Shown: positions 15-51,101 of the stretch, piece by piece
Numbering within the stretch: position 1 is the stretch's first letter
Layout of the letters: the number at the start of each line of letters is the position of its first letter
Sequence record: PV400809.1
Length of the DNA stretch: 64,000 nucleotides
Reading direction: 5' to 3' (one strand)
Position numbers and translations under genes: made by a program
The notes under the pieces: generated by a model
The model's input: only the letters and a program-made list of their open reading frames with translations
The model's database searches: none
What the model was told of the DNA's origin: nothing

Positions 15-2357
15 GTGACGTTGGATACGGGCCACCTGTGGATCTATATTGCAGACCGTACGGATTGGGTTGATGTCGGTCAGTATAAAGGCAAGGACGG
101 CAAGGACGGTACTGACGGTAAGAGTATCGTGGTGAAAGGGGCGGTAGACCTGGCTAGTGAACTCCCGAGTAACGCGGTCGAACAGGATGTCTGGTCGGTT
201 CGCGCGGACAATACAGTCCGTATGTGGATTGAGAATAACTGGGTAATTCTGGGTAAATTCAAGGGAGAGGATGGTAAGAACGGTGTTGACGGTCGTAACC
301 TGATCGTTAAAGACACTGTAGCGACCATAGATGACCTCCCCAACCCCGGTGTAGAACAGGATGTTTATTCGGTTCAGGATGAGAATACCCTGTACATCTA
401 CCTGAACAGCGCATGGCGGAAGCTGGGGGGGTTTAAAGGGGATAAGGGTGATGCAGGACCGGGTGGTCTGAACAGTGTTCAGGTCTGGTTGAATAAACCC
501 GAGAACCAAGGTAAGACGGAAGATGATTACTGGGCGGCCATGAAAGGCGAACCCGGTGAGAACCTGAATGTCTTGGGGACTGTAGGGACCCGTGCTGATC
601 TGGACAACTTACCCAACCCTCCGACTAACCAAGATGGGTATGTGACACGAGACACCCTTCGGTTGTACGTATGGAGTGCAGCGAGTTCGACCTGGTTGGA
701 CCTGGGTCCCTTTAAAGGGGAAGACGGTATCAATGGCCAGTCCACGTACGAACTCTGGATTTCCAAAGGGAACACCGGCAGTGAAGAGGAGTTCCTAGCC
801 AGCCTCCATGGTCGTGACGGCACCAACATTGTTCTTCGGGGTGTGGTTGACACAGTAGCGGATCTTCCTGCGGATCCTGAAGATCAATGGGTCTATGCGG
901 TTCGTGATGAAAACGCGATCTATGGATTCATTTCGAATGCGTGGGCGAATCTGGGTGTCTTTAAAGGGAAGGATGGTGAGGACGGTAAGGATGGCCTGAA
1001 TGGCAAGTCCTTGGACATCATTAAAGTCCTGACACCTGCGGATGCAGATCCTCCTCCGATTAACGAGGAAACTCAAGGTAAAGCCTACGTTGACCTGAAT
1101 AAAGACCTCTGGGTGAATACTGGAACTCGTTGGGATAACGTGGGTCCGGTCTCCATGCCAGGAAGTGATGGCGCTCCCGGTGCTGGGTTGAACATGGTGG
1201 ATGTAGTACCCACCTTGGCAGAACTGCCTGCGCCAGGTGGTTATAAGCAAGGTGACGCTATCCTCGTTCTGGAGAATCATTTAACGTATTTCGTGAATGA
1301 TGAGGGCGAGTGGAGTCCTGGGTTTGATTTCCGGGGTGAACCGGGTAAGGACGGGGAACGGGGTGAACAAGGTCCCGAAGGTCCTACGGTGCCCATTAAA
1401 GGGGATTATGCGAACCTGGCAGCTTTACAAGCGGCTATTCCTGCGGGGGTTGCGGGGGATGCGTATTACCTGGCGGAGTCCAACACTCTAGCCATCTGGA
1501 GTACGTCGACTAACGCCTGGCGTGAAACCGGTGAATGGCGCGGTCAAACCGGTAAGACCGGGGGTGACGGTCCTCCCGGACCTCAAGGGAAACCCGGTAT
1601 TCAGGGTGAGCAAGGCAGCCGGTGGCTTACGTTGCCGCCGGGTGTAGACGCACCTTCGGATGCCTTCAGTGGTCGAGTCGGTGACTGGGCAGTCTCTGAG
1701 ACCTTCAATGTGTTCTACAAGACCGTTGATCGGGGTTGGGTCCTGTGGGGGCGTTTGGTGGCGGGTGATGTCAATTCCCCCATGGAGTCTGAAGGCCGGG
1801 TTGTCCGGTTGGGTAACCGTTGGGTCCCCCTCCCTATTGGTCCCGTACCGAATGCGGTTCCAGGGTCGTATTACGCCCAGGCTGTCAATGCAGAAGGTGA
1901 CGGTACCGAATGGAAAGCTATTGAGTTTCCGAAGGGTATTGAAGACCTCCAAGCCAAGGATGGTAAACAGTACGTTCGGGTCTTCCGTGCCGGTACGGAT
2001 ATTCCTGAATGGAAGGAGTTGGATCTCACCTTTGACCGCTATGATTTGCCGATTAAGGTCTTTACGACCAGTGGGGAAATCAATCCGTTGGTGGATCAGT
2101 ACATCCAGATCAATAACACCGCGGCGGGGGGTAAGCAAATGGTGATTGCTGATGGACCTAAAGCCCCAGTACGGGGAATGGTCTTGACGGTTAATGTCAC
2201 CGGTGGAGCGGGTGTTGTGACCTTCTCCGGTAAAGGTGCAACACCCTTGGTGTGGCATAACGGAACTCCCCCTTCTGTCAGTGGATCTGAACTGGTCTAC
2301 GTCTTTACCTGGAATGGAACCAAGTGGATTGGTGCGTTGGGGGCTGTTGTTCCTTAA
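15..2357 (+). CDS. Collagen-like long tail fibre protein (5'-truncated by window edge)
   Basis: Frame is open to the window start (QHGWVTLD...). About 10 repeated ~45-50 aa modules (…V.G.V.T..DLP…Q.D.Y.V…L.IW….W..LG.FKG) separated by Gly-X-Y stretches; YELWISKGNTGSEEEFLASL motif typical of phage collagen-like fibres. Confidence 0.8.
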   Translation: MTLDTGHLWIYIADRTDWVDVGQYKGKDGKDGTDGKSIVVKGAVDLASELPSNAVEQDVWSVRADNTVRMWIENNWVILGKFKGEDGKNGVDGRNLIVKDTVATIDDLPNPGVEQDVYSVQDENTLYIYLNSAWRKLGGFKGDKGDAGPGGLNSVQVWLNKPENQGKTEDDYWAAMKGEPGENLNVLGTVGTRADLDNLPNPPTNQDGYVTRDTLRLYVWSAASSTWLDLGPFKGEDGINGQSTYELWISKGNTGSEEEFLASLHGRDGTNIVLRGVVDTVADLPADPEDQWVYAVRDENAIYGFISNAWANLGVFKGKDGEDGKDGLNGKSLDIIKVLTPADADPPPINEETQGKAYVDLNKDLWVNTGTRWDNVGPVSMPGSDGAPGAGLNMVDVVPTLAELPAPGGYKQGDAILVLENHLTYFVNDEGEWSPGFDFRGEPGKDGERGEQGPEGPTVPIKGDYANLAALQAAIPAGVAGDAYYLAESNTLAIWSTSTNAWRETGEWRGQTGKTGGDGPPGPQGKPGIQGEQGSRWLTLPPGVDAPSDAFSGRVGDWAVSETFNVFYKTVDRGWVLWGRLVAGDVNSPMESEGRVVRLGNRWVPLPIGPVPNAVPGSYYAQAVNAEGDGTEWKAIEFPKGIEDLQAKDGKQYVRVFRAGTDIPEWKELDLTFDRYDLPIKVFTTSGEINPLVDQYIQINNTAAGGKQMVIADGPKAPVRGMVLTVNVTGGAGVVTFSGKGATPLVWHNGTPPSVSGSELVYVFTWNGTKWIGALGAVVP

Positions 2358-2367
2358 CAGTATGACT

Positions 2368-2405
2368 ACCAGGGGGGTCTACGGGGCCTCCCTGGTATTC
2401 TTTTT
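2368..2405 (+). terminator. Intrinsic terminator after tail fibre
   Basis: ACCAGGGGG…CCTCCCTGGT stem followed by ATTCTTTTT. Confidence 0.6.
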
Positions 2406-2420
2406 GGGGTATAAGTCATC

Positions 2421-3923
2421 ATGATAGAAGCGTTACTCTTTACATCGACCGCGAATGCCTTTCCGGACGATCCTTATCCGGGGCCTTCTAAATTGAAAGC
2501 GGGTAGTCTTGCCCAAGGATGGTACGGGATCACTCCTGCAACGGAATTGTTTGGTTACGAGGATTTAGCGAAACTCACTGGGATTGCCTTTGGTAAAGTG
2601 ATCAATGAAGGCAAACCGTGGTTGAAGTTTTCGAACCACAATGAAACCTGTTACATTCCTCAAATGCCGATCCGGAATAATGTTCGGCGTATTCTGTTGA
2701 CCCAAGCCGGTCTACGGACAGGGAGCTATGAGCTCCGGTACCGAGGGGTTATTTACACCGTGGGTCTCTTGACCATGGGGAGTGATGGCAATACAGCAAC
2801 GTCTGAATGGGACCGGTTGTTGTATAACGTCCATGTATCAGATCCCAATGGATTCAACTGGCCCACTCGGTTCACGGATGCAGAACTGGGGATGAATCAA
2901 GCGGCCAGCGGGGGTAATACTAACGGGAATACCAACTGGGGTAAAGACATTACGGGTAATGAACCCGGTACCACTCAAGCGTATCGGGGGTGGTACACCA
3001 TTAGGAATGTCACGTACTCTGCCAGTGATTCTGAAGTCCCTACCCAGGGATGGCGACCTATTCTGTATGCCAAGGGGACGTACCCGTTTATTGAAGGTCA
3101 GAGTGAAGCGATGGTTAACTGGCCGGGTTCATTGTTATTCAATACCGGACGGGGATGTGTCCATGGAAACCATATCTACTACTACGGTGGGGTAGAGACC
3201 GCTACCAAAGAGTTCCGTCGGGTTAACTTTGAAACCCGGGTACTTGAAACCCTGAGTCCAACAGGGCCTACCAATCCCCCCCGGAAGAACTCCATCCTGG
3301 TTTCTGATGGTAAGGATGTTCTTTACTTCCTAGGAGGCGCTGCGAATGATGCGTACGGGTATAATCCCACTACGAACATCGTCACCCGTTTACCCAATAT
3401 GCCCCTGACTCCGCTGACAGGTGGAGCGGTTTATCTCAATGGGAAGGTGTACATCTGCGGGGTACAGTCAGGAACCCCCACCACGAATAAAGGCTTCTTG
3501 ATTGCGTACGATCCTGTTGCCAATACCCACACCGTCCTTAAGGCCTTCGCTGAGAGTGGAGATTGTTCTGACTTTACGGTAATGGTTTATCAAGGGAAGG
3601 TGAGTGTTATTGGTGGGGTAGTGGCGGGGGCGAACAACCCTGGGATGTACCAGTATAACCCGGCTACGAACACCTGGACAACGGTGACTCTTCCTGGTAT
3701 CCCAGTTGGTGCAGCCTTTGTGCTGGGGAATAATGGGGAACTCTACGCGATTGCGGGGAGTGTTAATGATCAACCAATTCAGTATTTTGAACCTCGGTTG
3801 AACAAGTGGGTGCTATTGGGAAGTTTGGGCTCGGGTGTTGCTACGAGTGCGTGGGGGGTGAACTACAACCAAGCCCTCTACCTCTTTGGCGGTTCCCAAG
3901 GGTATCGGATTAAAATCACGTAA
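2421..3923 (+). CDS. Virion tail-associated protein: phiKZ-like paralogous N-terminal domain fused to a Kelch beta-propeller
   Basis: N-terminal PGPSKLKAG…GWYG…WLKF…PIR pattern recalled from phiKZ-family tail paralogs; C-terminal GG…Y.P.TN.W Kelch blades. Confidence 0.7.
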   Translation: MIEALLFTSTANAFPDDPYPGPSKLKAGSLAQGWYGITPATELFGYEDLAKLTGIAFGKVINEGKPWLKFSNHNETCYIPQMPIRNNVRRILLTQAGLRTGSYELRYRGVIYTVGLLTMGSDGNTATSEWDRLLYNVHVSDPNGFNWPTRFTDAELGMNQAASGGNTNGNTNWGKDITGNEPGTTQAYRGWYTIRNVTYSASDSEVPTQGWRPILYAKGTYPFIEGQSEAMVNWPGSLLFNTGRGCVHGNHIYYYGGVETATKEFRRVNFETRVLETLSPTGPTNPPRKNSILVSDGKDVLYFLGGAANDAYGYNPTTNIVTRLPNMPLTPLTGGAVYLNGKVYICGVQSGTPTTNKGFLIAYDPVANTHTVLKAFAESGDCSDFTVMVYQGKVSVIGGVVAGANNPGMYQYNPATNTWTTVTLPGIPVGAAFVLGNNGELYAIAGSVNDQPIQYFEPRLNKWVLLGSLGSGVATSAWGVNYNQALYLFGGSQGYRIKIT

Positions 3924-4606
3924 TGAGGAGAATGAGTATGGATAAGGTAACCGTGGTATATGAAAGCACCGCCTTGATTGATACGCGTACGGGGGAGTAT
4001 CCTCTTTACATTGAGGATGTTCGGAAGAAGTTCCCTGACTGGCCCATTCCCAGTAAACTGCAAGCCAGTGCCTTGGAAGGAGAACCCTTCCTGATGGCTG
4101 TCGTTCAACTGACCCAGCCACCCGCCGGGGATGTACCGGTTGAACTCCCCCCTAAACAGATTGATGGGTATTGGACCCAGCAGTGGACTACTCGGGACTT
4201 TACCCCTGAGGAAGTCGCAGAACGCCTCCGATCCGCTAAGGACATTCGTAAGAATGAAATCCAGAATGTGATTGCGGCGGCTTTCTACACAGGCATGGAA
4301 GTGCGATTCGGGGAGACGGTCCACACCCTCTTGATCGAATCCACCCACCGAATCCATTTGACGGCCTTGAGTATTCAGGCGAAAGAAGCATTGAGTGAAG
4401 AGAAACCCTTCTCCGCTTCTATTCGTACCAAGGAAGGTGTAACGCTTTCCCTGACCGCTCAAGAAACCATTGACTTGTCCAATGAAGTGACTTCTCGTAT
4501 CCAGGAAGGACTGGAAACGATATGGTCCCTTATGGATAGAGCTGAAGCAGCCACCACCGCAGAGGAACTCCCTCCCGTTCCGGGTCCTTTGTTTGTGTTG
4601 AACTGA
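3923..4606 (+). CDS. Tail fibre assembly/chaperone-like protein (DUF4376-like C-terminus)
   Basis: TGEYP…R; WTQQWTTRDFTPEE followed by a helical C-terminus ending AATTAEELPPVP; lies among tail fibre genes. Confidence 0.6.
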   Translation: MRRMSMDKVTVVYESTALIDTRTGEYPLYIEDVRKKFPDWPIPSKLQASALEGEPFLMAVVQLTQPPAGDVPVELPPKQIDGYWTQQWTTRDFTPEEVAERLRSAKDIRKNEIQNVIAAAFYTGMEVRFGETVHTLLIESTHRIHLTALSIQAKEALSEEKPFSASIRTKEGVTLSLTAQETIDLSNEVTSRIQEGLETIWSLMDRAEAATTAEELPPVPGPLFVLN

Positions 4607-4651
4607 AATCAGTAAGAGAGGGTGTTAATCCCTCTCTTTAGGAGCGGCTAC

Positions 4652-5578
4652 ATGTTAGAAAGTCAACTATTTACCCTTTCTGATGATAACCCCTACATTC
4701 TGGGACGAATGGAATGGGTGACTCAAGTTCCTTTCAACGGTATTGCTAACTTCAGTGCGGGTATCGGTGGAGGGAAGATTCATATCTTCGGAGGTCAGTT
4801 TGCCGGTGGGGGTCAACAACAGACGTATACCCGTTATGACTTTACCACCCGTACGTGGGCCACTAGCGGGAATATCTCCGTATGGGCCTGGAGTGGCGGG
4901 TGTTACTGCAACAGTTCCTTCTGGGGTATTACGGGTAATAATGGGAACTACGTGAGTCACGTGTGGAAATTGAATCCTTCAACAGGGTCTTCAACGAACT
5001 TGAATAATCTCCCGGATGGAGCCCGGGGACAAGGTCGGTGTATTACTCTGGATGATAAGACGATCTTCTGCATGGGGGGTTACATGGGGAGTACCAATAA
5101 ACCCACAGCCCTCAACCACCAGTATGACACCACCACCAACGTCTGGACCCGTAAAGCGGATATGCCGATGGCGCTCAATGGGCATTACATCGGACAGTTC
5201 AATGGAAAGATCTATGTATTCGGGGGATGGAACGACCCCGCGGGTACGTCAAGACTGGTCAGGGAATACGATCCCGTTACCAACACCTGGAGAACGGTAA
5301 CAGAAGCACCTATTGCCAGTAGTTGGACTGGGGGGACTTCGTGGAAACAGTTTCTGATTCTCTGTGGTGTTGAAAACGGTTACATCGTGTTCCATATTTA
5401 CGACATACTGAAAGACCGTTGGTACAAGCAAATGACCACGGTAACTAAACGGTATGCCTTTGAGATGCTCACGGATGACAGCGGGATTTACCTGGTAGGG
5501 GGTGTTAATTCTTCCACCATTGGATCAGGAGATTACTACCAAGCAGGACGCTACCGAGATATCTACCGTTTCTTTTGA
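4652..5578 (+). CDS. Kelch-repeat beta-propeller protein, probably tail-associated
   Basis: Six Kelch-like blades (IHIFGG, IFCMGG, IYVFGG, IYLVGG; YDxxTxxW); AGGAG RBS upstream of ATG 4652. Confidence 0.8.
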   Translation: MLESQLFTLSDDNPYILGRMEWVTQVPFNGIANFSAGIGGGKIHIFGGQFAGGGQQQTYTRYDFTTRTWATSGNISVWAWSGGCYCNSSFWGITGNNGNYVSHVWKLNPSTGSSTNLNNLPDGARGQGRCITLDDKTIFCMGGYMGSTNKPTALNHQYDTTTNVWTRKADMPMALNGHYIGQFNGKIYVFGGWNDPAGTSRLVREYDPVTNTWRTVTEAPIASSWTGGTSWKQFLILCGVENGYIVFHIYDILKDRWYKQMTTVTKRYAFEMLTDDSGIYLVGGVNSSTIGSGDYYQAGRYRDIYRFF

Positions 5579-6220: not shown

Positions 6221-7084
6221 CTATTTCGAGAACTTTTCCAACAGACGCTGGGTGTTGACTGACAGGTCAGATGTCTTTTGTTTGTGAGCGACATGTCGGG
6301 TTTCTTTCTTCTGGAGGTTATACCCCCGGGAGATTTGTTTACCCGGGAACTGGGAAATGTCCAACGGGAAGACAAACCCATTGCAGGCAATGAGATTCTT
6401 GTTAGGTCCCCTAGGATCCCAGTACAGCGCAACGCGAACACTGTCTTCATGAATGTGAGTGATCGTGAATTCCAGACGAACCATTTCCGGGAAGACCGCT
6501 TTAAACAGCTTGTAGAAGAAGTCCGGAAGGTGTTTAGCGGTGTTCTCGAAGAGCCCTCGACCTTTGCTGAGGTTGCTGGCGTACAGGGCGACTACCGCAT
6601 CCTGAACCGACAACGACACCTTATCGATGATAAACGAGAAGGCAACGTCTTCACGGATCACCAAATAAGACGTATGGGTAGCGGTTCCCACGATGACGAT
6701 TTTGAAGGCCCCACCCTCCCGTTCGCTGATAACCGCATAGAGGATAATACCAGCGTCCAACTCAATGCTGCGACGAGGAGCGTCTTTCTCTTCCTTGGTG
6801 TGGGGAAGACCGGTGGCGATGTTGATCACCAACGTACGGGGATCGGGTGACGAACTGTAGGCCTTACACAACCCGTAGGTTTCCAGGGTGTGGTAGAACG
6901 CTTTCTGGCCTTCGGTCAGACGGTGATGAACTTGGAGGACCAGTTGGTCAGGGTTCTCGATCGTATCCGGTCCCATGAGGTTTACCGGGAGGAATTTCGA
7001 TTTACCGGGATGCGTCTTAGAAGACACTACCCGAACATCACCACCTTGGAAACTGTTGGTCTTCTTCTGGTTTTCTTCTTTCAT
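6221..7084 (-). CDS. Hypothetical protein
   Basis: 287-aa ORF in the minus-strand gene run; no recognised motif. Confidence 0.65.
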   Translation of the reverse strand: MKEENQKKTNSFQGGDVRVVSSKTHPGKSKFLPVNLMGPDTIENPDQLVLQVHHRLTEGQKAFYHTLETYGLCKAYSSSPDPRTLVINIATGLPHTKEEKDAPRRSIELDAGIILYAVISEREGGAFKIVIVGTATHTSYLVIREDVAFSFIIDKVSLSVQDAVVALYASNLSKGRGLFENTAKHLPDFFYKLFKAVFPEMVRLEFTITHIHEDSVRVALYWDPRGPNKNLIACNGFVFPLDISQFPGKQISRGYNLQKKETRHVAHKQKTSDLSVNTQRLLEKFSK

Positions 7085-7096
7085 GATGTAATCCTC

Positions 7097-7675
7097 TTAC
7101 TTTCGGATGAGACGAACCACTGCATCAATGGGATGCCATTGAATCGGAACACTGTGGTCTTTAGCATTATCCAAGGTCGTTGTTACGATCAACCGACCGG
7201 GTTTTTCAGGCTTCCATTCCAGAGACGCAATATACCCTTCCCCTTTCCATTCACCTTCAACAGAAATCACTCTGGGGACTAAGGATTCGTTCAAGAGCTC
7301 CATGAGATGGGGATACGCCACACTGTGCAGGTAGATAGCCTCCCGGGTACCGGTCATCCAGAGCCCTTTAAACAGGTTAAACCATATCTCCCGGTACGCT
7401 GTACTGGGTAAAGGAACCTGAATAGTCCTCCGTCTTCCCTGGGTGGGGAAGAAGTAATACCGGCTCGCCTCCCGGTCACTGATCCCCACCAACCACCCCT
7501 CAGGCAGTTTAACGGACGAATAATACCGGATCGCGTATTGGAGCTTGTGGCGTACTAAGTGACACCGTTTCTTGTGGGACTTTTCCAAATGACCAATGAA
7601 GAAAGAACCATCGTTGGGATCGATGTACAATCGACTGGACAAGAGACCCACAGGTTGGTCTGAGGTATTCAGCAT
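7097..7675 (-). CDS. Hypothetical protein
   Basis: 192-aa ORF with upstream GAGG. Confidence 0.6.
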   Translation of the reverse strand: MLNTSDQPVGLLSSRLYIDPNDGSFFIGHLEKSHKKRCHLVRHKLQYAIRYYSSVKLPEGWLVGISDREASRYYFFPTQGRRRTIQVPLPSTAYREIWFNLFKGLWMTGTREAIYLHSVAYPHLMELLNESLVPRVISVEGEWKGEGYIASLEWKPEKPGRLIVTTTLDNAKDHSVPIQWHPIDAVVRLIRK

Positions 7676-7704
7676 GGGATTGATTCCCTCGGTAAGGTTA
7701 CCGT

Positions 7705-8589
7705 TTAATGGCAGAACGAGTGATAAGGTACCAGGGTGGTACGATCTTTCTCACCGACGAACCAGTACTTATCTGTAGGTTTGAGTTTAACGGTACCGAA
7801 TTCTCCCCGGTCATAGTTCATCCGCCACCAGTTCCCTTTACTCGCATCGAATCCCAGGATAATGATTTTATCCCCAGGGAGTTTGACTTCGGTGACTTCT
7901 TCGACTGTACTCTCATCCACGAGGTGGTAACCCAGAATCGATTGATACGCGTAGCGGTAGTACCGCTTACCGGTAATTTCAAAATCCCCGTAAGGGACTT
8001 TGCACTCCGCAACTACGGTATAGCGACCGGTGAGCATTTGTTTCTGGACGAACATCCACCCCCCATAGAGACCACTTCCCACAACCGCCAAGAGCCCAAC
8101 AACAATGGACCACAGTCGAATACGTTTCTTACGGTTATATTCCCGTACTCGCTTCAGCGCTGCCAATGCGCGTTCTGCGGCGTCTACGGTGTCTTCTTGG
8201 GTGAGTTCAGCCTTCTTACGAACCACCATCTCCAACAGGCCTTCTACCTGCTTGGTCTTCGGTTTAGTACCCAGGGTATTTCCTTTCAGGACATTCTCTT
8301 CATGTTCCTGGGTTACCGAAGTCTTCAAGGATTCCACTAATCGGTCCTCTTCCTGTTTGAGAGCGGCTTTCCACTCGATGTATTCAGGGGTTCCCTTCTT
8401 CGGCTGAAGGGCGGGGTGAGAATAGCGGTTGAGGATGTCCGACGTACCTGGATGTTGTATGACGTCCTCTTTGGACACCGGAGTTACGTCTTCCCCTGCG
8501 TTGTCCAGTTCATTGAGTGCCTTATCCAAGTCTTCATCAGAGATAGACGTAAGACCTTGTTTATCAGGATTGTTCTCATTCTTCGGCAT
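7705..8589 (-). CDS. Single-pass membrane protein
   Basis: Acidic/coiled-coil N-terminus, basic RKKRIR stretch, TM helix LWSIVVGLLAVVGSGLYGGWMFV, beta-rich C-terminal domain. Confidence 0.7.
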   Translation of the reverse strand: MPKNENNPDKQGLTSISDEDLDKALNELDNAGEDVTPVSKEDVIQHPGTSDILNRYSHPALQPKKGTPEYIEWKAALKQEEDRLVESLKTSVTQEHEENVLKGNTLGTKPKTKQVEGLLEMVVRKKAELTQEDTVDAAERALAALKRVREYNRKKRIRLWSIVVGLLAVVGSGLYGGWMFVQKQMLTGRYTVVAECKVPYGDFEITGKRYYRYAYQSILGYHLVDESTVEEVTEVKLPGDKIIILGFDASKGNWWRMNYDRGEFGTVKLKPTDKYWFVGEKDRTTLVPYHSFCH

Positions 8590-8689
8590 GGTTATTACCT
8601 TTTTGGGTTGGTGTATTGAAAAATTTAAAGCGGTAATAACCCCTACCCCGCTCCACCGGAGCGTTAAGCCCAGTGGAGCAGGTAGAGGA

Positions 8690-9271
8690 TCAAAGTCCCA
8701 CCCGAGTGAGTAGGAAGGGGACTGAAGTGTTCATCCCAGTCCGGAGATCTTGGTAATTCACCAAACCGAACAAAGGATGAGGCGTTTTGAAGGTAATCCC
8801 TACGTTGTAAGGATGGCCGTCTACGGTCACGTCAATACCGGGGGTGCGCATGGGACGGAGAATACTCAGGATCGTTTTGGGATAATCGCGTTCCAGAAAC
8901 TCGTCCTGCAATTTGTATACCGTTTCCGACACAGTAATACCCAACCGTACGTAGTAGTACGGGATGTTGTTATTCCGGTTGAACGCGAAGACCGCTTCTT
9001 CGCCGTACGCTTCAATATCTCGGTTATTCAGAATTCTGCCCGATACAAAGTTGGGGGTCTTAACGATGTTGTCGAGCAGATCGAGCGCGTAAATAAACTC
9101 TTTGATCAACTGGGGGTCGAGGCCAAGTTTGTCAAACGTTTTCACAAACGCGGGATTAAAGGCATCCCGGATCTCGTGCAGAGGAAGATCATCGTCTTCC
9201 TTGCCGGGGGACGTAGAAAAGTTACCCCTTTTAGCAGTACTCATACTCATGGTGAATATTCCTAATGACAT
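8690..9271 (-). CDS. Hypothetical protein
   Basis: 193-aa ORF downstream of a promoter-like motif at 9338-9348. Confidence 0.65.
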   Translation of the reverse strand: MSLGIFTMSMSTAKRGNFSTSPGKEDDDLPLHEIRDAFNPAFVKTFDKLGLDPQLIKEFIYALDLLDNIVKTPNFVSGRILNNRDIEAYGEEAVFAFNRNNNIPYYYVRLGITVSETVYKLQDEFLERDYPKTILSILRPMRTPGIDVTVDGHPYNVGITFKTPHPLFGLVNYQDLRTGMNTSVPFLLTRVGL

Positions 9272-9388
9272 TTAAAGCACCAGTTGCAAGAGAATTCATT
9301 CATCCGTGAACTTTTATTGCCCCTGGCTCACACTGATGATGTAGATTTGAAATTCACTGGAATTGAAATGAGGTACGAAGGAGAGGTA

Positions 9389-9420
9389 AACTACCCAGTG
9401 GGCTAGCCCACTGGGTAGTT
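9389..9420 (-). terminator. Perfect 32-bp palindrome, probable terminator
   Basis: AACTACCCAGTGGGCTAGCCCACTGGGTAGTT directly after the stop of 9428..10063. Confidence 0.6.
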
Positions 9421-9427
9421 ATCTGGC

Positions 9428-10063
9428 TTACGGTTGGGGTTCGGGTTCAGGCTGAGTGATTTCTTTGAATTCCAGACGACCGTAGTCAGTTTCCGGAATC
9501 TCGATGATCGGAGCCTTACCAATTTCGTACACGAGCTCGCCGCGGGTGAACGGGTTGGTGGTTACCTTGAGCACCTTGGCGGTGGCGGTGTCGACATCGG
9601 CGTCGTCCAGGACGTATTCGAAGTTGGCCTTGAACAGCGCCAGGGCGTCGGCGGCTTGGGTTTCAGTGGTGGTGGTGGAAGCCAGCACCAGGCCCACGCG
9701 TTGAACCGCTTCTTCGCCTTCACCGACCAGGTAAACGTAGGCACCCGGGGTGGTCTGCTCGGCCAGTTGGTCTTCGCCGGTCAGAGGAGCACCTTTGTTC
9801 ACCACCACGAAGGCGAACGGAGTGTTGATGTTTGCCGGGAGCCATTTTTGTTCGACACCCTTGAAGTTGCGGCTCACAGAGGTGACCGTGGCGCTTTGCA
9901 GCTCGGGGTTGGTACCGTCGGCGGTGATATCGGAGATCGTGATGTCCGCGAGGGTCAGGCCGTCAAAGAGAGCGAGCATTTCTGCGTCGTCTTTGTAGCG
10001 GTCTTTGTTGAACTCGACGAATTTGTCGAGAAAGATCGTTTGGATTGGAAGGTTTGAAGCCAT
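9428..10063 (-). CDS. Probable highly expressed virion/structural protein
   Basis: 211 aa, acidic, Thr/Ala-rich; strong G/C third-position bias; GAGGA RBS; C-terminal PETDYGRLEFKE motif. Confidence 0.75.
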   Translation of the reverse strand: MASNLPIQTIFLDKFVEFNKDRYKDDAEMLALFDGLTLADITISDITADGTNPELQSATVTSVSRNFKGVEQKWLPANINTPFAFVVVNKGAPLTGEDQLAEQTTPGAYVYLVGEGEEAVQRVGLVLASTTTTETQAADALALFKANFEYVLDDADVDTATAKVLKVTTNPFTRGELVYEIGKAPIIEIPETDYGRLEFKEITQPEPEPQP

Positions 10064-10184
10064 TGCTTTATCCTCTTAAAGGTGGTCCAATGGGAGTAAG
10101 TCAAAAGAAGTTACAAGACTCACTGCATAGGATGTCTACCTCCTTCAAATGCTTCGTCATCCATCGATTTCCTTAAAAAAAAAA

Positions 10185-10217
10185 TAAAGGAGTAGGGGTC
10201 TTCCCCCTACTCCTTTA
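10185..10217 (-). terminator. Intrinsic terminator after groEL
   Basis: TAAAGGAGTAGGGG/CCCCTACTCCTTTA stem followed on the minus strand by a long T tract. Confidence 0.8.
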
Positions 10218-10225
10218 CAAACCCC

Positions 10226-11902
10226 TTACCGCACCTTAACCGCCGACAACTTCTCCCCTAGGATCAGTGTCTTCGTAGTGGCCAAGATCTTAGCGGTTTG
10301 GAGTCCGCCTTTCAGCGCAGTGATAGAGGCATACGCGGTGTCATAAATACCCAATCCCTCCGGGGTACCAATCTCACCAGTTGCCAGATTCATGACGGTC
10401 GGCGTATTGAGCCAATCATCATTAAAATGGAAACTCCCATTTTCCTTATACAGTGACGTGTCCTTGAACAACAGCTTATGCTGAATAGTGGACAGCCGCA
10501 TCAACTCATTGGCAACGCCTGAGTTGATATACCGCTTAGCAAACTCAGCGCTCTGGTCTTTATCTTCGAGGCCTTCCTTGATCGTACCGAAGACCGCCTT
10601 AACCAGGGATACACCACCGCCAGGAAGGATACCGTTCTCCAAGGCGGAGCGAATGGCTTTCACCACATCCTCGTACCGGTCTACCCGTTCCTTGACTTCA
10701 GAATAGGTTTCACCGCCTACGGAAATGGTGATCAACTTACCCCGTAGGGTCCGAATACGCCGTTCGTTGTACCGGGCGCGTACGGAGAACTTATCGCTGA
10801 GGCTAAACCCCTCCAACAGTTCCTCAATACCCCGAGCATGTTGTTCGATCCGGTCTTCATCCTTAGGTGTGGTACTCTTCAGGATAGACCGATTCCCCCC
10901 CAGTTCCAGTTGGCCGTGTTGGCCATTGATCGAATGGGCATCCAACTTGGTCAGGTCCGCTACGTCACTGAGCATAGGGGCGTTCAGCATGACCGCGATG
11001 TCTTGCAGTTCGGAAGTCCCAATTGCACCACCTACCGGCGTACTCAACGGAATCAACCAAGGGCGCCCATCTTCTACCAGGGTTGGGTGCGCCGCATTCA
11101 ATTGCATCAGGGTCGAGTTAGCGGCTTCTTCGAAACTTCGTGCAATCAGCAGGATGGGAAGGGTCAGGTGTTGTTTGTGAGTTTTCACAAGGTGATTCAC
11201 CCCATCAATCAACTTCTGGGTGTCTTCCTTGTCAATCCGACGATCGATAACGAACGCCGTAAACCCTGTTAATTCTGTCACACCCCCTTGATGGCCTTTC
11301 GCAAACCAGGGATTCGCGTAGAACATACGGATGGTACGCCCTGTGGTTTGTTCGATCTGGTCTTCGAAGTTGACCCCTTCCTTGAGTTCAATATCCGGAT
11401 AACTCCCTTTATTCTTCGCATAGAGGTCGCTGACCAGTCGGGCGAGCTTTTCATCCTGGTTAGACGAGGTCAGTGCCACTTGATACAACCGAGGGTCATC
11501 CACTTCCACTCGTATCGCCATGGATTCCAAACGTTGGATAACCCGCTCTACCAGGTCTTCAATGTTCCGGTGGTGTTGGAAGCCTGGGAAGTCCTTGAAC
11601 AGGTGATAGAGCGCATGGGTCAGCATGATGGTGGTGGTAGTGCCATCCCCGCATTCCTCATCGGTCTTCGTAGCCGGCTCGGTAATTACCCGGTTCACCA
11701 ATTCATGGGCTTCATCTGCAAAGCGAATGGAACGGGCTACCGTCACCCCATCCTTGGTGGTCTTGGTGGAGACCCCATTCTTGATCATCACCAACTGACC
11801 ATTCGGACCCATGGTCGAAGTGACGGCGTCATACACCTCACTCAAGACCTGTTTAATAATCCCTTGGGCTTCTTCACCATGTACCAGCAGCGTTTGAGAC
11901 AT
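10226..11902 (-). CDS. groEL: Phage chaperonin GroEL (EL gp146-like)
   Basis: TKDGVTVA, GDGTTT, GGGVSL chaperonin motifs; 558 aa from MSQTLL; near-identical to my recollection of phage EL gp146. Confidence 0.97.
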   Translation of the reverse strand: MSQTLLVHGEEAQGIIKQVLSEVYDAVTSTMGPNGQLVMIKNGVSTKTTKDGVTVARSIRFADEAHELVNRVITEPATKTDEECGDGTTTTIMLTHALYHLFKDFPGFQHHRNIEDLVERVIQRLESMAIRVEVDDPRLYQVALTSSNQDEKLARLVSDLYAKNKGSYPDIELKEGVNFEDQIEQTTGRTIRMFYANPWFAKGHQGGVTELTGFTAFVIDRRIDKEDTQKLIDGVNHLVKTHKQHLTLPILLIARSFEEAANSTLMQLNAAHPTLVEDGRPWLIPLSTPVGGAIGTSELQDIAVMLNAPMLSDVADLTKLDAHSINGQHGQLELGGNRSILKSTTPKDEDRIEQHARGIEELLEGFSLSDKFSVRARYNERRIRTLRGKLITISVGGETYSEVKERVDRYEDVVKAIRSALENGILPGGGVSLVKAVFGTIKEGLEDKDQSAEFAKRYINSGVANELMRLSTIQHKLLFKDTSLYKENGSFHFNDDWLNTPTVMNLATGEIGTPEGLGIYDTAYASITALKGGLQTAKILATTKTLILGEKLSAVKVR

Positions 11903-11945
11903 CTTCATACTCCTGTTAAACCATACCTAATTGCATTACACCTGG

Positions 11946-43777: not shown

Positions 43778-45019
43778 ATGTACATCTATAAAAGGGCGGT
43801 TGGGATCAACCAAATCTTCCCCCGAGGAGAGGAATTGGTGGATATCGGTGAGATGACCACCAAGGAACTGGTGGCTACGTTTTGTGAATTAAAGATTGTG
43901 GTGAAAGATGGGTTGTATGGCCGGGATGTGGTCATTGACCTGGTAGACTATCATAACCAGTTCCTGTTGTTCGATGGGGTGATCCAACAGTGGTTAGACA
44001 CCCAGATCAATGTCCCCCTTAAGACCAGTAATACCCTCCCCGGCAGTGAGTACCGGTATGTAACAGCTCAAGACATCCAATACAAATGGTTTACCCTGTA
44101 TCCTGGTGACGCTAAGATTGCCAATGATCGCCAGGAACACCTGGACGTTGCGAGCGCACCGGATATTCGGGTTATCAAGACCGATCGAACGGCGGTGGAT
44201 TATAACGCCTTGGTTGAACGGGGGTTGTGGACAATCAATGGAGGGCATTTGGTACGAGCGGTGGCGGATGACCAGGCGGTGTACCTGTTGAACGGTGGGA
44301 AGCACTTCAATGTGAATGACAACATTCATGTGAACTACCTTAACTTCAATACCCTCTCTAAACTCAAGACCTACACCTTCCAAGAGACGGATATCGACTT
44401 TGAGGATCACGACAGTTACAACTTCCTGCACGTACGGTCTCCAGTCAGTCTAAGGAATAAGACAGTCTGGATGAGTATTGGAGGTCGGTTGTACCTGAAT
44501 GACGTGGTACAGGTAATGAGTGACCGTACCTTAACGCTGCGTACGGAGAAGGTGGATTGGTTTTCCGCCCTCTTTATTTCGAAATCGATGATCGACCTCA
44601 GTCGGATCATTGATCCAGAACGTGAAGTCGTGGATAAACGGTTCTTCAGTACAGAGAGCTTCTGGAAGACTCTGTTAACCGATCCCAGTACCTTCCTCAT
44701 CGTACTGGATAATCCCAACCTGTATGTGTCCGTGGAGCCCATCACCACGTACCAGTATCCCTTCACCTACCACACCCATGAAACCCGTTCTATTCCCTTA
44801 ATGGTCAGTAATGGCCTTATTCCCAAGTACTTCACTCGCAAAATCATCAACAGGAGACTTTTAGACATCGACCTAGGCATTCAACGTAAATTCCTCAACA
44901 AGACCACCGGTATTACCAACGGTGGAAACCTTTATCACGGGTATACCAATCGCTTCGAACCCAGTTCGTTGTACAACGGTTACCACCTTTACATTCGAAG
45001 TGTTATTCAAGAGGATTGA
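43778..45019 (+). CDS. Virion structural protein (phiKZ-family)
   Basis: 413 aa, AAGGAG RBS, located in the tail cluster. Confidence 0.65.
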   Translation: MYIYKRAVGINQIFPRGEELVDIGEMTTKELVATFCELKIVVKDGLYGRDVVIDLVDYHNQFLLFDGVIQQWLDTQINVPLKTSNTLPGSEYRYVTAQDIQYKWFTLYPGDAKIANDRQEHLDVASAPDIRVIKTDRTAVDYNALVERGLWTINGGHLVRAVADDQAVYLLNGGKHFNVNDNIHVNYLNFNTLSKLKTYTFQETDIDFEDHDSYNFLHVRSPVSLRNKTVWMSIGGRLYLNDVVQVMSDRTLTLRTEKVDWFSALFISKSMIDLSRIIDPEREVVDKRFFSTESFWKTLLTDPSTFLIVLDNPNLYVSVEPITTYQYPFTYHTHETRSIPLMVSNGLIPKYFTRKIINRRLLDIDLGIQRKFLNKTTGITNGGNLYHGYTNRFEPSSLYNGYHLYIRSVIQED

Positions 45020-45055
45020 CCTGTTATGAACCCAATACCGTTAGGAGGATCCATT

Positions 45056-45517
45056 ATGACATGGATTAGAGACGTGATTCTGATATTGATTCTGGCGGTT
45101 GTCGCGTGGCAGGCCATTGTGCCACGTAACCCCACTATCAGTGTAGAAGCGGTTAATGGGATTCAACGCGTTACCAACCAGTTGCAACGGGTGGCTGACA
45201 ACATGGAAAACAATTCCAATGCCACAGCCGCCTTAACCCAAACCCTCGCCCGTCAGTTGGAACAGCGAACTGAAGAGGACAACTCAGGCTATGCAAAACT
45301 ACTTGAAAAATATGGGGTGGATGTTAATCTGTCTAGTATCCCTGATCCTAGTGGGATGCAGCAACAACCCCAAACTGTCCGAGACCAACTCAATCCTCCA
45401 GGTTCAAGCGGAGCAAGTAAGGATCAACACGTACCGGAAGCAAGTCCTGGCAGCTCAGGAAAGGCTGACCCAAGTGCTCCCTCAACTCAAGAACCCACCC
45501 GCGGAGATGCCTCCTAG
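45056..45517 (+). CDS. Inner-membrane spanin (i-spanin, Rz-like)
   Basis: N-terminal TM VILILILAVVAWQAIV, coiled coil, Pro/Gln-rich tail; AGGAGG RBS; overlaps a lipoprotein gene. Confidence 0.7.
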   Translation: MTWIRDVILILILAVVAWQAIVPRNPTISVEAVNGIQRVTNQLQRVADNMENNSNATAALTQTLARQLEQRTEEDNSGYAKLLEKYGVDVNLSSIPDPSGMQQQPQTVRDQLNPPGSSGASKDQHVPEASPGSSGKADPSAPSTQEPTRGDAS

Positions 45518-46768: not shown

Positions 46769-47385
46769 ACGTAACAGGCGGGGTGGGCGTAGGGTAGGTA
46801 AATCACCACGATGAACTCAGACACAAGATCATTCAACATGAACTTGGACGGAGCCCATTGGGCGTCACCACGATATGCCACGTGGAATGCCGTCACAGAG
46901 CGTGGAAGGTCCGCACTCCAGTTATTGGTCCACCGACCACCCGCAATGTTGTACTGATTCAACAGAGTGGCCATCCGTTTGGCATAATCCATCGGATCAG
47001 GGGTCATGGGCGGCGGCGCGTCGGTAATATACCGCAGCCAATCCAGCTCTGTGACGCTCCCCACAAACTCCGGTGGACCCGCCCAGATGATGTTCTCATC
47101 GGCATTCACGACCGCCGCCATGGGATTGACCAGGGTGGTGTCGTCCAGCGGCTTACGTGCAACACCCGCTTTGTTGACGAAATGCACCACAACCTCACCC
47201 GTCACAGGGTCGAGCAGGTCCAGAATGACTTTATCACCATCAACGATGGCTTGGGCTTCCTTGAAGTCTTCCGGTTTCAGGGTGGTTTGATAGAAGGCGT
47301 TGGCTATCTCAATTGCCTGACCTGCCGTCATATTCTCAACCAGTGGAAGGTGAACTTCTCCTTTTAGTATGGCTGGGATTTCCAT
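46753..47385 (-). CDS. Hypothetical (probable virion) protein
   Basis: 210 aa in the late operon, AAGGA RBS. Confidence 0.65.
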   Translation of the reverse strand: MEIPAILKGEVHLPLVENMTAGQAIEIANAFYQTTLKPEDFKEAQAIVDGDKVILDLLDPVTGEVVVHFVNKAGVARKPLDDTTLVNPMAAVVNADENIIWAGPPEFVGSVTELDWLRYITDAPPPMTPDPMDYAKRMATLLNQYNIAGGRWTNNWSADLPRSVTAFHVAYRGDAQWAPSKFMLNDLVSEFIVVIYLPYAHPACYVCFAS

Positions 47386-47388
47386 GGG

Positions 47389-48336
47389 TCAGTTTCCTTG
47401 TCCAGTTGGGGGTTGAGTTGAATTGGTATGCAAGAGCATGGGTGCGCTTGCACCGTGGTCAAACGCAAGCTGGATCTTGATGTTAGAGAGCGCATTGCGG
47501 CCATCACGTTCAGTCATGTAGTGGGCAAAGACTGCACTCATGACCTCGGTATACTGGATAGTCGCGCCTCCAGCAATCTCCCCACGGAATTGAGTATCAA
47601 TCCCATAAGCAACACCCACTTCGTTAATGGATGCGTATCCCGCATCCCCGTAGTAGATTTTGCAGGCTTGTGAAATCTCACGCAAATCAGATTGAGTCAA
47701 CGAACAGTCCAAAATAGCCGAACTGTTAATGTACTCATTGCTGACAGGAATGTTACCCTCACTGGTAAAGTCAACCGGTTGTGGGTTATCCAGGTCGTCT
47801 TTACGGTGAATGTAAGGTTTAACATCCTCCAGACCGGTTACAGGATCACGAGTGATCTTGTTTTCGGTTGGATTATAGTTATCGAAATTAACCAACTTCA
47901 ACCAATAGAACTCGTAAGGAATACCGTTTCTAGCCTCCACGGTCCTCATACGAAACTTCTCGCGGTTAAGGTTGTCCAAAGGGGCGTCCAAAGGACGTGC
48001 AATAAAGGGAACGGGTGTAAACAGGTTCATGTCAATCGGTTGGTGTTGGTTCACCTTCAATCGACTGACCCCCCGACTGTCTTTACCATCACAGTTGGAT
48101 CCCCTTACACCAATCCCGAAATACTTCAAGTAGAAATCTCGGGAATTCTTACTTCCCAGGGATTCTTCAGCCAGAATACCATAATGCTCATTGAGCGTGG
48201 TGTACTTGGGAATGGTAATCGGTTGACCAGTGACGATACATTTCGCGATCAGATTACCCATGGAGGTATTCGTGGTCGTCTGAGCGGGAACCTCAGATCG
48301 ATTCTGATCCTGGAGTTCATTAGCAGAAAGTGCCAT
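47389..48336 (-). CDS. Virion structural protein (phiKZ-family baseplate-associated)
   Basis: 315 aa; LKYFGIG and PFIARPLD…L pattern recalled from phiKZ-like structural proteins. Confidence 0.6.
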   Translation of the reverse strand: MALSANELQDQNRSEVPAQTTTNTSMGNLIAKCIVTGQPITIPKYTTLNEHYGILAEESLGSKNSRDFYLKYFGIGVRGSNCDGKDSRGVSRLKVNQHQPIDMNLFTPVPFIARPLDAPLDNLNREKFRMRTVEARNGIPYEFYWLKLVNFDNYNPTENKITRDPVTGLEDVKPYIHRKDDLDNPQPVDFTSEGNIPVSNEYINSSAILDCSLTQSDLREISQACKIYYGDAGYASINEVGVAYGIDTQFRGEIAGGATIQYTEVMSAVFAHYMTERDGRNALSNIKIQLAFDHGASAPMLLHTNSTQPPTGQGN

Positions 48337-48757: not shown

Positions 48758-51079
48758 TTAGTCCTTATTAACGTCTTTAAATTGAAGTCTTCCACTAGGA
48801 GTGACCGCCGTAACCGGCCCTCTTAAGACCAGTCTGCCGTAGTTGGCGGGGTCAATCACCGTCGGGGGACTCAGCTCCTTAAACACAAGGCGGCCATAGT
48901 CCGCTGGACCTACGAGTGTTTCCTTATGCAGCTCTTTGAATACCAGACGCCCATAATTAGTTTCAGGGAGGCCCATACGATCTGCTGGTAACAGCCTGAA
49001 ATAGGAGTCATCGATTATCCGAACTGCATAGTCCAACAGGTTGGTGCTGAGATCCACCCGTTCAAAGATATCATCGCTACGCGCCACCCCATACCCTTCT
49101 GCAATCGCTGCCACCTCAGGGATCATAGGTTCAACCAGGGGATGAACCTCTTCAACGGTACGAACACCATCGAAATGGGTGGGAACATCCATCTGAACAT
49201 GGGTGTAATCCCCGAAGGCACCATTTCCCTTCCCAATCCACCGGGGATCCCCAACAAAGATCTCACTGGGGAGCTCCGTTAAGTCCGTACCGTCATCGAT
49301 TTCCTTAATGACCTGGATGGTGTAAGACGACAGCTGCATCATGATATCAATGAGGTTTGACTGTTTAATCCTCAAGGACGGGTTATTGTTGCTGTCCCAA
49401 CCCGTGATGCGTTTGAAGATCTCCCAGGCAAAGTTACGGGCTTCTTCCGGGGTGTATTCCGTAAAGTCGAACTCATACCGATTCAAGAGTTGTTGGTAGG
49501 TAGTCAGGTCCGTGATCGTGGCGTTTCCAGACTCGTACATGAACTTCGTGGTGTTCTCCATCCGCGTACGCATGTTCAAGTCGTAGAACTGACTCGACAT
49601 CTTCTTGTGTTTCCACATGAGCGCGTAAACTTCTTCAGAATACGCCATGAGGTATTCCGGTGCAATAAAGGTGTTCACCGGAATCCACACGTTACGGATG
49701 TCATACGCCATAATCGGCGTAATGAACGAAGGACCCCCAATATCAATCAAGGCTTCCAGGGTGGGAGGAACCGCTTTTAATACGTTGTGGTAATACGCCG
49801 GACAGATGTTGACCGGTTTTTGATCCCTGGCGAAGTCCACCAAGTACCGCCACACGTAGTAGGCATCCCCAACCGGGAGTCTGACCTGTTTACCGGATTT
49901 AGGATCGGTAACCAGAATACGCCCTTTAAAGTACCCCTTAGCGGTTAAGTAAATCCATTCATTAAAGACTACCGACATCTTGGTATCGATGTGACGGTTG
50001 GTGTAATCCATCATTTTGGATTCCAACGTCTTCGTGGGCAGTTCAGAATGGTTACTGTGTTTCCCTTTCTGCAACGCGTCGTGATAGTACATGGACGCTT
50101 GATTAGGGTTCTCTTTTGCCAAGGGTTGTTGTTTATCGATCATGTGTCGGGTATCGATAAACGTGGCTTCTCGACCGTAGTCTTCCTGCAAGTTAAGCTG
50201 GAGCCTACGGTACAGGGGATTGGGAACCAATTCTTCCAACTGATTCGCTGTATTCTCCACCATATCAAACTTGGCCAGGGGAATACGAGCGTGGGTCAGG
50301 AGGTTGTCCATCAACTTCCCAAAGGTATACTGCTGACCGGGGTTGTTATCAATCCATGCGATGTTGCGGTACAACCACATGGTTTGATACCGATCTAAAC
50401 TTTCCTTGTACTTGGAGAACGCCCCGTAGGAATCAATGTGACTCCAAATATAGAAATCATGAGCATACCGCGTCCCAATGGCTTCATGCCGAATGGTGCA
50501 AATGGCTTTGAACAGGTCAGCATACAGCAACATAATCCCGAAAGGGAGCATCAAGTCATCTGTTAACCGGTATTCGTGACGGAAGACTTGTTCCACTTCA
50601 CTGTAGATCCAAGCTTGGAGTTGAGGGATCAATTGGTCCTCATTCCATTGCACCAAAGCCTTATTGTATTTGAGGATCTTATAGTCCTCAGCCTCTATGG
50701 TCTCCTCGTAGGGGATTGGTGCAATAATGCCGCGAATCAATTCAGCTTGTCCCGGGTACCGTTCGACCAAGCGATTGAACCAATAGCCCCCGGTAGCATA
50801 CTCCCTGGCCGTCGCTAAATGGGTCACCAAGTTGTCTTTATTGAAGACAATTTCGTCACCGGTATCAATCGACGTAATAGTCATGATCTGATCATTGGGG
50901 TGGTAGTCCCCATTCAGGTTCATGTAGTACCGCCAGGTCCTTTTATCCAACCCGACAGGATAACCCGCTTCCTCCAGGACTTTGTTATCCCGTAAGGCAA
51001 TGGCTTCTATTTTGATGACCATGGTTCTGACTAGACGAAACACGTCAGTCAGATAAGCATTAAATTCAATATTGTCCAT
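48758..51079 (-). CDS. Virion structural protein (phiKZ gp128-like, probable baseplate wedge) with C-terminal peptide repeats
   Basis: WRYYMNLNGDYHP and SIDTGDEIVF pattern; start MDNIEF at 51079; 3-4 YGRL repeats at the C-terminus. Confidence 0.7.
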   Translation of the reverse strand: MDNIEFNAYLTDVFRLVRTMVIKIEAIALRDNKVLEEAGYPVGLDKRTWRYYMNLNGDYHPNDQIMTITSIDTGDEIVFNKDNLVTHLATAREYATGGYWFNRLVERYPGQAELIRGIIAPIPYEETIEAEDYKILKYNKALVQWNEDQLIPQLQAWIYSEVEQVFRHEYRLTDDLMLPFGIMLLYADLFKAICTIRHEAIGTRYAHDFYIWSHIDSYGAFSKYKESLDRYQTMWLYRNIAWIDNNPGQQYTFGKLMDNLLTHARIPLAKFDMVENTANQLEELVPNPLYRRLQLNLQEDYGREATFIDTRHMIDKQQPLAKENPNQASMYYHDALQKGKHSNHSELPTKTLESKMMDYTNRHIDTKMSVVFNEWIYLTAKGYFKGRILVTDPKSGKQVRLPVGDAYYVWRYLVDFARDQKPVNICPAYYHNVLKAVPPTLEALIDIGGPSFITPIMAYDIRNVWIPVNTFIAPEYLMAYSEEVYALMWKHKKMSSQFYDLNMRTRMENTTKFMYESGNATITDLTTYQQLLNRYEFDFTEYTPEEARNFAWEIFKRITGWDSNNNPSLRIKQSNLIDIMMQLSSYTIQVIKEIDDGTDLTELPSEIFVGDPRWIGKGNGAFGDYTHVQMDVPTHFDGVRTVEEVHPLVEPMIPEVAAIAEGYGVARSDDIFERVDLSTNLLDYAVRIIDDSYFRLLPADRMGLPETNYGRLVFKELHKETLVGPADYGRLVFKELSPPTVIDPANYGRLVLRGPVTAVTPSGRLQFKDVNKD
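48770..48970 (-). repeat. Tandem ~19-aa P-x-[DN]-YGRL-x-FKE coding repeat
   Basis: PETNYGRLVFKEL / PADYGRLVFKEL / PANYGRLVLRG / PSGRLQFKD. Confidence 0.9.
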
Positions 51080-51101
51080 AGTTCGCTCGAAGAGGTTAAG
51101 A

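Follow-up and report, generated by a model that had tools for sequence, protein, structure and literature searches.

A peptide shared by the baseplate wedge protein and a small protein family of EL-like jumbo phages: a candidate docking element

Main finding

A short peptide recurs near the C-terminus of a small protein (gp147) and as a four-unit array in the C-terminal tail of the baseplate wedge protein (gp104) of Pseudomonas phage vB_PaeM_GXNNE2, and it is conserved in both protein families across the EL/RisingSun clade. Judging from sequence comparisons and structure models, we give about an even chance to the explanation that the peptide acts as a short linear element for docking in the peripheral baseplate, carried in several copies by the wedge. 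The outer baseplate and the fibre attachment of nucleus-forming jumbo phages are largely unmodelled, even in the new phiKZ (PMC13250141) and Goslar (PMC13742148) maps. A peptide common to the wedge and to a small adaptor family offers a handle on the attachment of this outer region to the wedge in the EL/RisingSun branch.

The window analysed here, 64,000 nucleotides long, was identified by Megablast as positions 1–64000 of the 209.7-kb genome of this phage (PV400809.1), an Elvirus of the Chimalliviridae with 97–98% identity to phage EL.

The shared peptide in gp147 and gp104

The EL gp147 gene (9428..10063, minus strand) encodes a protein of 211 aa, in which residues 189–202 (9458..9499, minus strand) are IPETDYGRLEFKEI. 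A preceding interpretation of this DNA from its letters (hereafter the sequence-only reading) had set the peptide at 9458–9500 and at the very end of the protein. The start was right and the end lies one base too far; the peptide is present, and nine further residues with a Pro/Glu-rich end follow it, so that it stands near the C-terminus, not at it. The 773-aa product of the EL gp104 gene (48758..51079, minus strand) ends in an array of four units (48770..48970, minus strand) that begin at residues 704, 723, 742 and 758, i.e. with a period of 19, 19 and 16 residues. On the minus strand the units occupy 48929..48970, 48872..48913, 48815..48856 and 48770..48808, and the fourth is degenerate. 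The terminal gp104 sequences quoted in the sequence-only reading occur there exactly, and alignment confirms its count of ten identical residues among 14 between the first gp104 unit and the gp147 peptide.

The peptide core spans nine residues, a hydrophobic residue and then P-x-T-x-Y-G-x-L, usually with an aromatic residue two residues on and often a Pro. BLASTP between gp147 and gp104 aligned the peptide stretch alone (E 5e-4), and among 1000 shuffled gp147 controls ten of 14 was reached once. Over all six frames of the window, the tetrapeptide YGRL is encoded four times, always within the gp147 and gp104 ORFs, and a whole-genome scan with three loose patterns found the full motif nowhere else in the 209.7 kb. 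At the DNA level, the peptide-coding stretches of the two genes are identical at 31 of 42 nucleotides, and their synonymous sites differ. This rules out recent gene conversion or copying as the origin of the likeness and indicates that selection keeps the peptide. The papers searched contained no description of the motif, in agreement with the sequence-only reading, and none of the gp147 family.

The wedge protein and its C-terminal tail

By homology over residues 1–596 to solved wedge chains (9xqs_C, PHIKZ128, E 9e-78; 36za_sR, E 4e-88; 11lx_Bh, E 1.5e-88), gp104 is a baseplate wedge protein related to phiKZ gp128, Goslar gp35 and T4 gp7. The large protein had been called baseplate-like from its sequence, which is borne out by the solved phiKZ and Goslar homologs. 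In phiKZ, gp128 is the single-copy member of a wedge heterotrimer with two gp87, and it is touched by the first gp139 dimer of a five-dimer band that bears the outer baseplate (PMC13250141). In Goslar, gp35 is equivalent to T4 gp7, and gp32, the gp139 homolog, is T4 gp8-like (PMC13742148). As for phiKZ gp128, the gp104 gene is flanked by a portal gene and a gp139-like gene: its divergent neighbour is a portal homolog (51072..54074, plus strand; E 5e-20 to phiKZ gp129), and two genes away lies the gene for a 315-aa homolog of phiKZ gp139 and Goslar gp32, i.e. the T4 gp8-like spoke protein (47389..48336, minus strand; phrog_3315, E 5e-101). The wedge ORF can be extended by 20 codons upstream to a GTG (48758..51139), an extension that overlaps the divergently oriented portal gene at its start (51072); the start codon in public records is the ATG at 51079.

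The tail sets gp104 apart from these homologs. The closest solved wedge chain (36za_sR) has only 595 residues against 773 in gp104, the C-terminal part of phiKZ gp128 is unlike that of gp104 and its tail bears no unit, and the wedge tail found no match among PDB sequences. Comparison of the phiKZ gp128 tail with phiKZ gp26, gp27, gp127, gp130 and gp139 gave no convincing shared peptide. The AF2 model of gp104 has a helix at residues 3–37, is mostly helical and is of low pLDDT in its N-terminal half; residues 565–773 are all below 50, with values of 26–41 in the array region. The model is poor overall (mean pLDDT 52.6, 25 sequences) and its low-confidence tail is weak evidence of disorder, so that the tail is described here as predicted to be unstructured.

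The gp147 family and its gene context

Over residues 3–207, gp147 matches the phrog_18233 profile (E 5.7e-92), a family without assigned function, for which a profile search of 1.84 billion proteins gave 88 representatives. Most family members are 185–225 aa long, while some, of 500–660 aa, begin with the same domain (phrog_21620, 'virion structural protein'); the globular domain of gp147 is also an N-terminal module in larger virion and fibre-cluster proteins. The EL record does not annotate gp147 as a virion protein, and no virion proteome data for EL gp147 were found in the literature searched. Several candidate identities were rejected: (i) a homolog of phiKZ gp139 (BLASTP E 0.12; the real homolog is the spoke-protein ORF described above); (ii) a homolog of phiKZ gp26 (no sequence similarity); and (iii) a gp131-like N-terminal fibre-base domain as in gp131 and gp133–135 (hhalign probability 0.2%). 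In a 354-aa protein (P0112), the gp147 domain is represented by its N-terminal part, to which a C-terminal domain of the RisingSun gp202–204 type, with the same closing residues, is fused. At the sequence level, this fusion suggests that the gp147 domain is a portable adaptor for fibre-cluster proteins.

The gp147 gene lies directly downstream of the GroEL-like chaperonin gene gp146 and has a good ribosome-binding site. Between the two genes, a terminator scan located a strong terminator-like hairpin of 15 pairs followed by T10 (10184..10218, minus strand). Just past the gp147 stop codon, direct reading of the sequence reveals a perfect 12-bp hairpin with a 4-nt loop (9391..9418, minus strand), which the scan missed because its T run is short. 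Flanked by these hairpins, gp147 resembles a single-gene unit. Its GC3 of 0.711 (genome mean 0.568, sd 0.053) ranks second among 179 genes, and its neighbours in GC3 are a gene annotated 'capsid and scaffold' and a 670-aa ORF that is a putative sheath gene by size alone. The gene thus looks like a highly expressed single-gene unit, in keeping with the earlier impression of an abundant small protein, although codon bias reflects expression only indirectly. The gene order chaperonin, gp147, gp148, gp149, gp150 and gp151 (6221..11908 in the window) is kept in the EL-clade contigs examined, at 28–50% protein identity.

Conservation and pairing across the clade

We compared 50 distinct wedge tails of the EL/RisingSun clade from metagenomes and IMG/VR, of which 40 carry one to five units each. 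The 102 units are spaced 15–21 residues apart, most often 17 or 19. I, L or V precedes the Pro at a frequency of 0.99, and the T (0.98), Y (0.98) and G (0.90) columns are likewise conserved, with an aromatic residue at 0.64 two residues past the Leu; the P and L columns were fixed by the search pattern, and T, Y and G were left free. The spacers are Pro-rich, and no residue exceeds 0.25 in any spacer column.

In the gp147 family, the unit lies 8–28 residues from the C-terminus in 28 of the 88 representatives, and nine further ones have L, M or I in place of Y. Another 19 end in a quite different conserved tail, and the remainder have acidic or other tails. In the C-terminal third of gp147 orthologs at ~50% identity, no block is better kept than the peptide, which is also kept in the tails of wedge orthologs at ~50% identity. 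The sequence-only reading had named a lack of conservation in orthologs of either gene as a finding that would refute its proposal; the motif is retained in both the gp147 and the wedge families, so that the proposal is not refuted on this point. Pattern scans of the kind that it proposed find the motif confined to gp147 and gp104 in GXNNE2 and kept in relatives.

Loci were found by a 5-sequence alignment, by synteny with the chaperonin gene and by a DNA pattern scan. In all 19 EL-clade contigs with the chaperonin locus, a peptide-bearing gp147 ortholog adjoins the chaperonin gene, and both proteins carry the peptide in 18 of 19 paired genomes. The lone uncoupled genome (IMGVR_UViG_3300009011_000002) combines the gp147 motif with a 703-aa wedge protein without array. 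The coupling of the two carriers is accordingly not strict, which counts against docking. Following the Leu, both EL proteins have F-K-E and both proteins of the relatives have Y/W-P; this lineage-matched flank points to a shared constraint within a lineage.

The nearest cultured relative outside the genus, Erwinia phage RisingSun, has the unit in its wedge protein gp89, in gp205 and gp206, and in a 583-aa putative virion structural protein. Its gp147-family genes sit inside the fibre gene cluster gp201–208; gp206 and gp207 were each detected by one peptide in crude lysate, as opposed to purified virions (PMC6034870). The tail of RisingSun gp201 contains two variant units 19 residues apart, with L or M for Y (D-[LM]-G-D-I). 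That of gp89 (locus L003, 1501..3795) contains one standard unit and two L/M variants at 23 and 19 residues, so that this wedge tail mirrors the tails of several family members. The wedge proteins of phage OBP and phiKZ (gp128) have no array, and tblastn found no gp147 relatives outside Elvirus and RisingSun/Joad, hence none in OBP. On these comparisons, the array is a clade-specific addition of EL/RisingSun.

These distributions bear on three alternatives. First, the likeness between gp147 and gp104 could be due to chance. In an exact DNA-pattern census of IMG/VR, the 71 matches comprised 22 gp147-family C-termini, four wedge tails and 45 unrelated ORFs; 22 of these 45 are shorter than 100 codons, and their number is about the chance expectation by a rough estimate. 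Such stray matches, and the single shuffle in 1000 that equalled the observed identity, are what a chance origin would lead one to expect. However, four copies stand in one protein and none in the rest of the genome outside gp147, and the peptide is conserved in both families across genera, which excludes chance to the point that its probability is negligible.

Second, the peptide could be a tag read by the GroEL-like phage chaperonin, which would sort its carriers, as the sequence-only reading had considered, or fold them. The constant adjacency of the chaperonin gene and peptide-bearing gp147 orthologs in the EL-clade contigs would fit, and RisingSun also has both the motif and a chaperonin homolog. 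In RisingSun, however, the genes of the carriers belong to the fibre cluster, at a distance of ~18 kb from the chaperonin gene. The OBP wedge protein has no array, Klebsiella phage N1M2 has a chaperonin homolog but no gp147 relative (tblastn), and in GXNNE2 the strong terminator parts the chaperonin gene from gp147. GroEL-type chaperonins recognise exposed hydrophobic surface rather than tags in the sequence, and no family of such tags is known. Sorting by the chaperonin gained no support beyond the conserved gene adjacency within the EL clade, and we consider it extremely unlikely.

Third, the peptide could bind a non-virion target, e.g. a host surface component, with the wedge array as a multivalent adhesin, or could be a modification site. 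This explanation is compatible with the tails that carry the units, which are flexible and probably exposed, at the periphery of the baseplate and near fibre genes, and with the conserved Thr, Tyr and Asp residues. Yet the motif is kept in phages of Pseudomonas, of Erwinia and of many uncultivated hosts, which is unlike host-range elements, and AF2 packs the peptide on the phage protein's own domain. As for modification, no co-occurring enzyme gene was found in the material examined. Host binding or modification, with no specific observation in its favour, is very improbable in our judgement.

Structure model of gp147 and the structural-repeat alternative

The AF2 model of gp147, built from a 72-sequence alignment, has a pLDDT of 95.6 and a pTM of 0.84. 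Residues 191–200, which lie within the peptide, are packed on the protein's own domain without regular secondary structure (pLDDT 94). Foldseek found no fold match in the PDB (best E 0.019, TM 0.15; library to 2026-04-08, from which the newest phage maps may be missing), and the gp147 profile found nothing among PDB sequences. Among predicted viral structures, the model matched only jumbo-phage proteins, chiefly RisingSun/Joad paralogs.

The cis-packed tail in this model may simply be part of the gp147 fold. A related alternative is that the peptide is a repeating structural unit inherited from a common ancestor, with no partner in common, i.e. a strand-plus-turn of ~20 residues that would form the last two strands of gp147 and a small independent sheet or solenoid in the wedge protein. 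On this view, the two proteins would resemble each other through local homology and not through a tag. Several observations are in line with a repeat of this kind. By BLASTP, the last strand of gp147 (residues 175–182), which lies exactly 20 residues before the motif, is aligned with the unit's second half and may be a second, degenerate unit. An aromatic-x-G-x-hydrophobic pattern is kept in this strand across the family, the tail is set in cis by AF2, and the array period is regular at 15–21 residues. The statement in the sequence-only reading that the two proteins look otherwise unrelated needs a caveat for this strand, while it stands insofar as BLASTP aligned only the peptide.

Other results argue against a structural repeat. 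Close orthologs have zero to five copies, and the Pro-rich spacers are unconserved. The pLDDT of the array is low (26–41), and the comparison of the gp147-family profile with the wedge tail was not significant (probability 3.5%). Moreover, the same domain bears quite different tails in place of the peptide tail in other family members. We regard common descent as a structural repeat as possible but doubtful.

Candidate function of the peptide

Docking by a multivalent tag, as first proposed in the sequence-only reading, is the best-fitting explanation and gives the peptide a candidate function. The features that argue for it are the anatomy of a docking element: a conserved core of 8–10 residues, its position on tails and in an array with variable spacers, a region predicted to be unstructured, a variable copy number and a carrier that reaches outward. 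There is also a link to fibres: some larger proteins join the gp147 domain to fibre-cluster domains, and in RisingSun the domain is encoded within the fibre cluster. The codon bias of gp147 counts against docking, because it would suit a protein made in far more copies than typical baseplate parts; so do the lack of a virion annotation for gp147 in EL and the detection of RisingSun gp206 and gp207 in crude lysate only.

The wedge protein at the inner baseplate reaches outward, and in the EL/RisingSun clade it has gained a C-terminal extension of ~170 residues, predicted to be unstructured, with one to five copies of the peptide. If the peptide is a docking element, the gp147-family proteins would be small globular adaptors with a single copy on a short C-terminal tail. 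Each copy would fit the same kind of socket through extended-strand packing or strand addition. In this way, one wedge could hold several copies of a partner, and gp147-type proteins could be held likewise.

Two proteins are candidates for the socket. The first is the gp147-type domain itself, which would receive the peptide in cis as long as the subunit is free and perhaps in trans once it is assembled. We consider it the most likely socket because AF2 packs the gp147 tail on its own domain with high confidence; it would permit tail exchange between subunits. The second candidate is the gp8-like spoke protein (47389..48336), since in phiKZ and Goslar it is with homologs of this protein that the wedge protein makes its known outward contact.

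A more specific possibility is that the peptide and the gp147-type domain make up a self-contained tail-exchange system, in which each wedge peptide would capture one domain and the displaced tail would capture the next. We think this unlikely. If true, the amount of peripheral baseplate or fibre-adaptor mass added outward from each wedge would be determined by the number of units, and phage tails would have a donor-strand-like assembly rule with an undescribed fold as the socket.

Comparison with known systems

The repeated-docking proposal has partial counterparts in other assemblies. In type VI secretion baseplates, the foot loops of TssG bind TssK trimers. TssG is a gp7-like wedge subunit with repeated short elements that each hold one peripheral partner, as proposed here for the wedge tail. 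However, its elements are two loops within a folded domain and not a tandem array on a free tail, and its partner does not carry the same element. In chaperone-usher pili, each subunit has a short extension by which the fold of the following subunit is completed or extended (donor-strand exchange), which is the model for the tail-exchange possibility; pili employ a chaperone and an usher, neither of which is present here, and that the gp147 fold is incomplete without its tail is an assumption.

Within the jumbo phages, the wedge protein of phiKZ and Goslar reaches outward to the first gp8-like spoke dimer. The C-terminus of phiKZ gp26, which cross-links the outer baseplate, inserts into the gp157 ring and the gp130/gp139 interface, and the peripheral baseplate of phiKZ uses flexible linkers (PMC13250141). 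A flexible C-terminal insertion into neighbours is the same kind of tie as proposed here. However, gp26 has 552 aa and no sequence likeness to gp147, and no shared repeated peptide is reported for phiKZ. By analogy, the comparisons with TssG, gp26 and pili are functional likenesses, not memberships.

With the peptide, the gp147 family and the variable C-terminal extension of the wedge proteins have a first functional lead, and metagenome annotation gains a simple sequence marker for both proteins. It leaves general knowledge of contractile tails unchanged.

A second gp147-family paralog and further observations

Outside the two families, a ~135-aa protein in unrelated 14-kb contigs (L100, 1422..1447; L116, 13597..13622) ends in I-P-N-T-D-Y-G-R-L plus five residues. 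The gp147 profile does not match this protein, whose N-terminus presumably resembles tail-fibre proteins of other phage groups, and its peptide could reflect convergence or chance.

The GXNNE2 genome encodes a second gp147-family paralog of 193 aa (EL ORF158; genome positions 206858..207439, outside the window, 44858..45439 in locus L009), which the EL record annotates at just 330 nt. Its tail is of the other conserved type, with a double aromatic-[DN]-G pattern ending in T-L-T-Y, which also closes RisingSun gp201 and the 19 family representatives with the quite different tail mentioned above. No other copy of this tail type was found in the same genome, where it is unique to its own gene. The paralog heads a fibre module with a GDSL-lipase-like protein, a collagen-like fibre and Kelch-like proteins, which crosses the end of the record into the window (15..5578). 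There, the collagen-like Gly-rich fibre gene of the EL ORF156 type (15..2357, continuing from 46915..47697 of locus L009) is split by the start of the linear record, and its first part is marked only as 'similar to tail fiber'.
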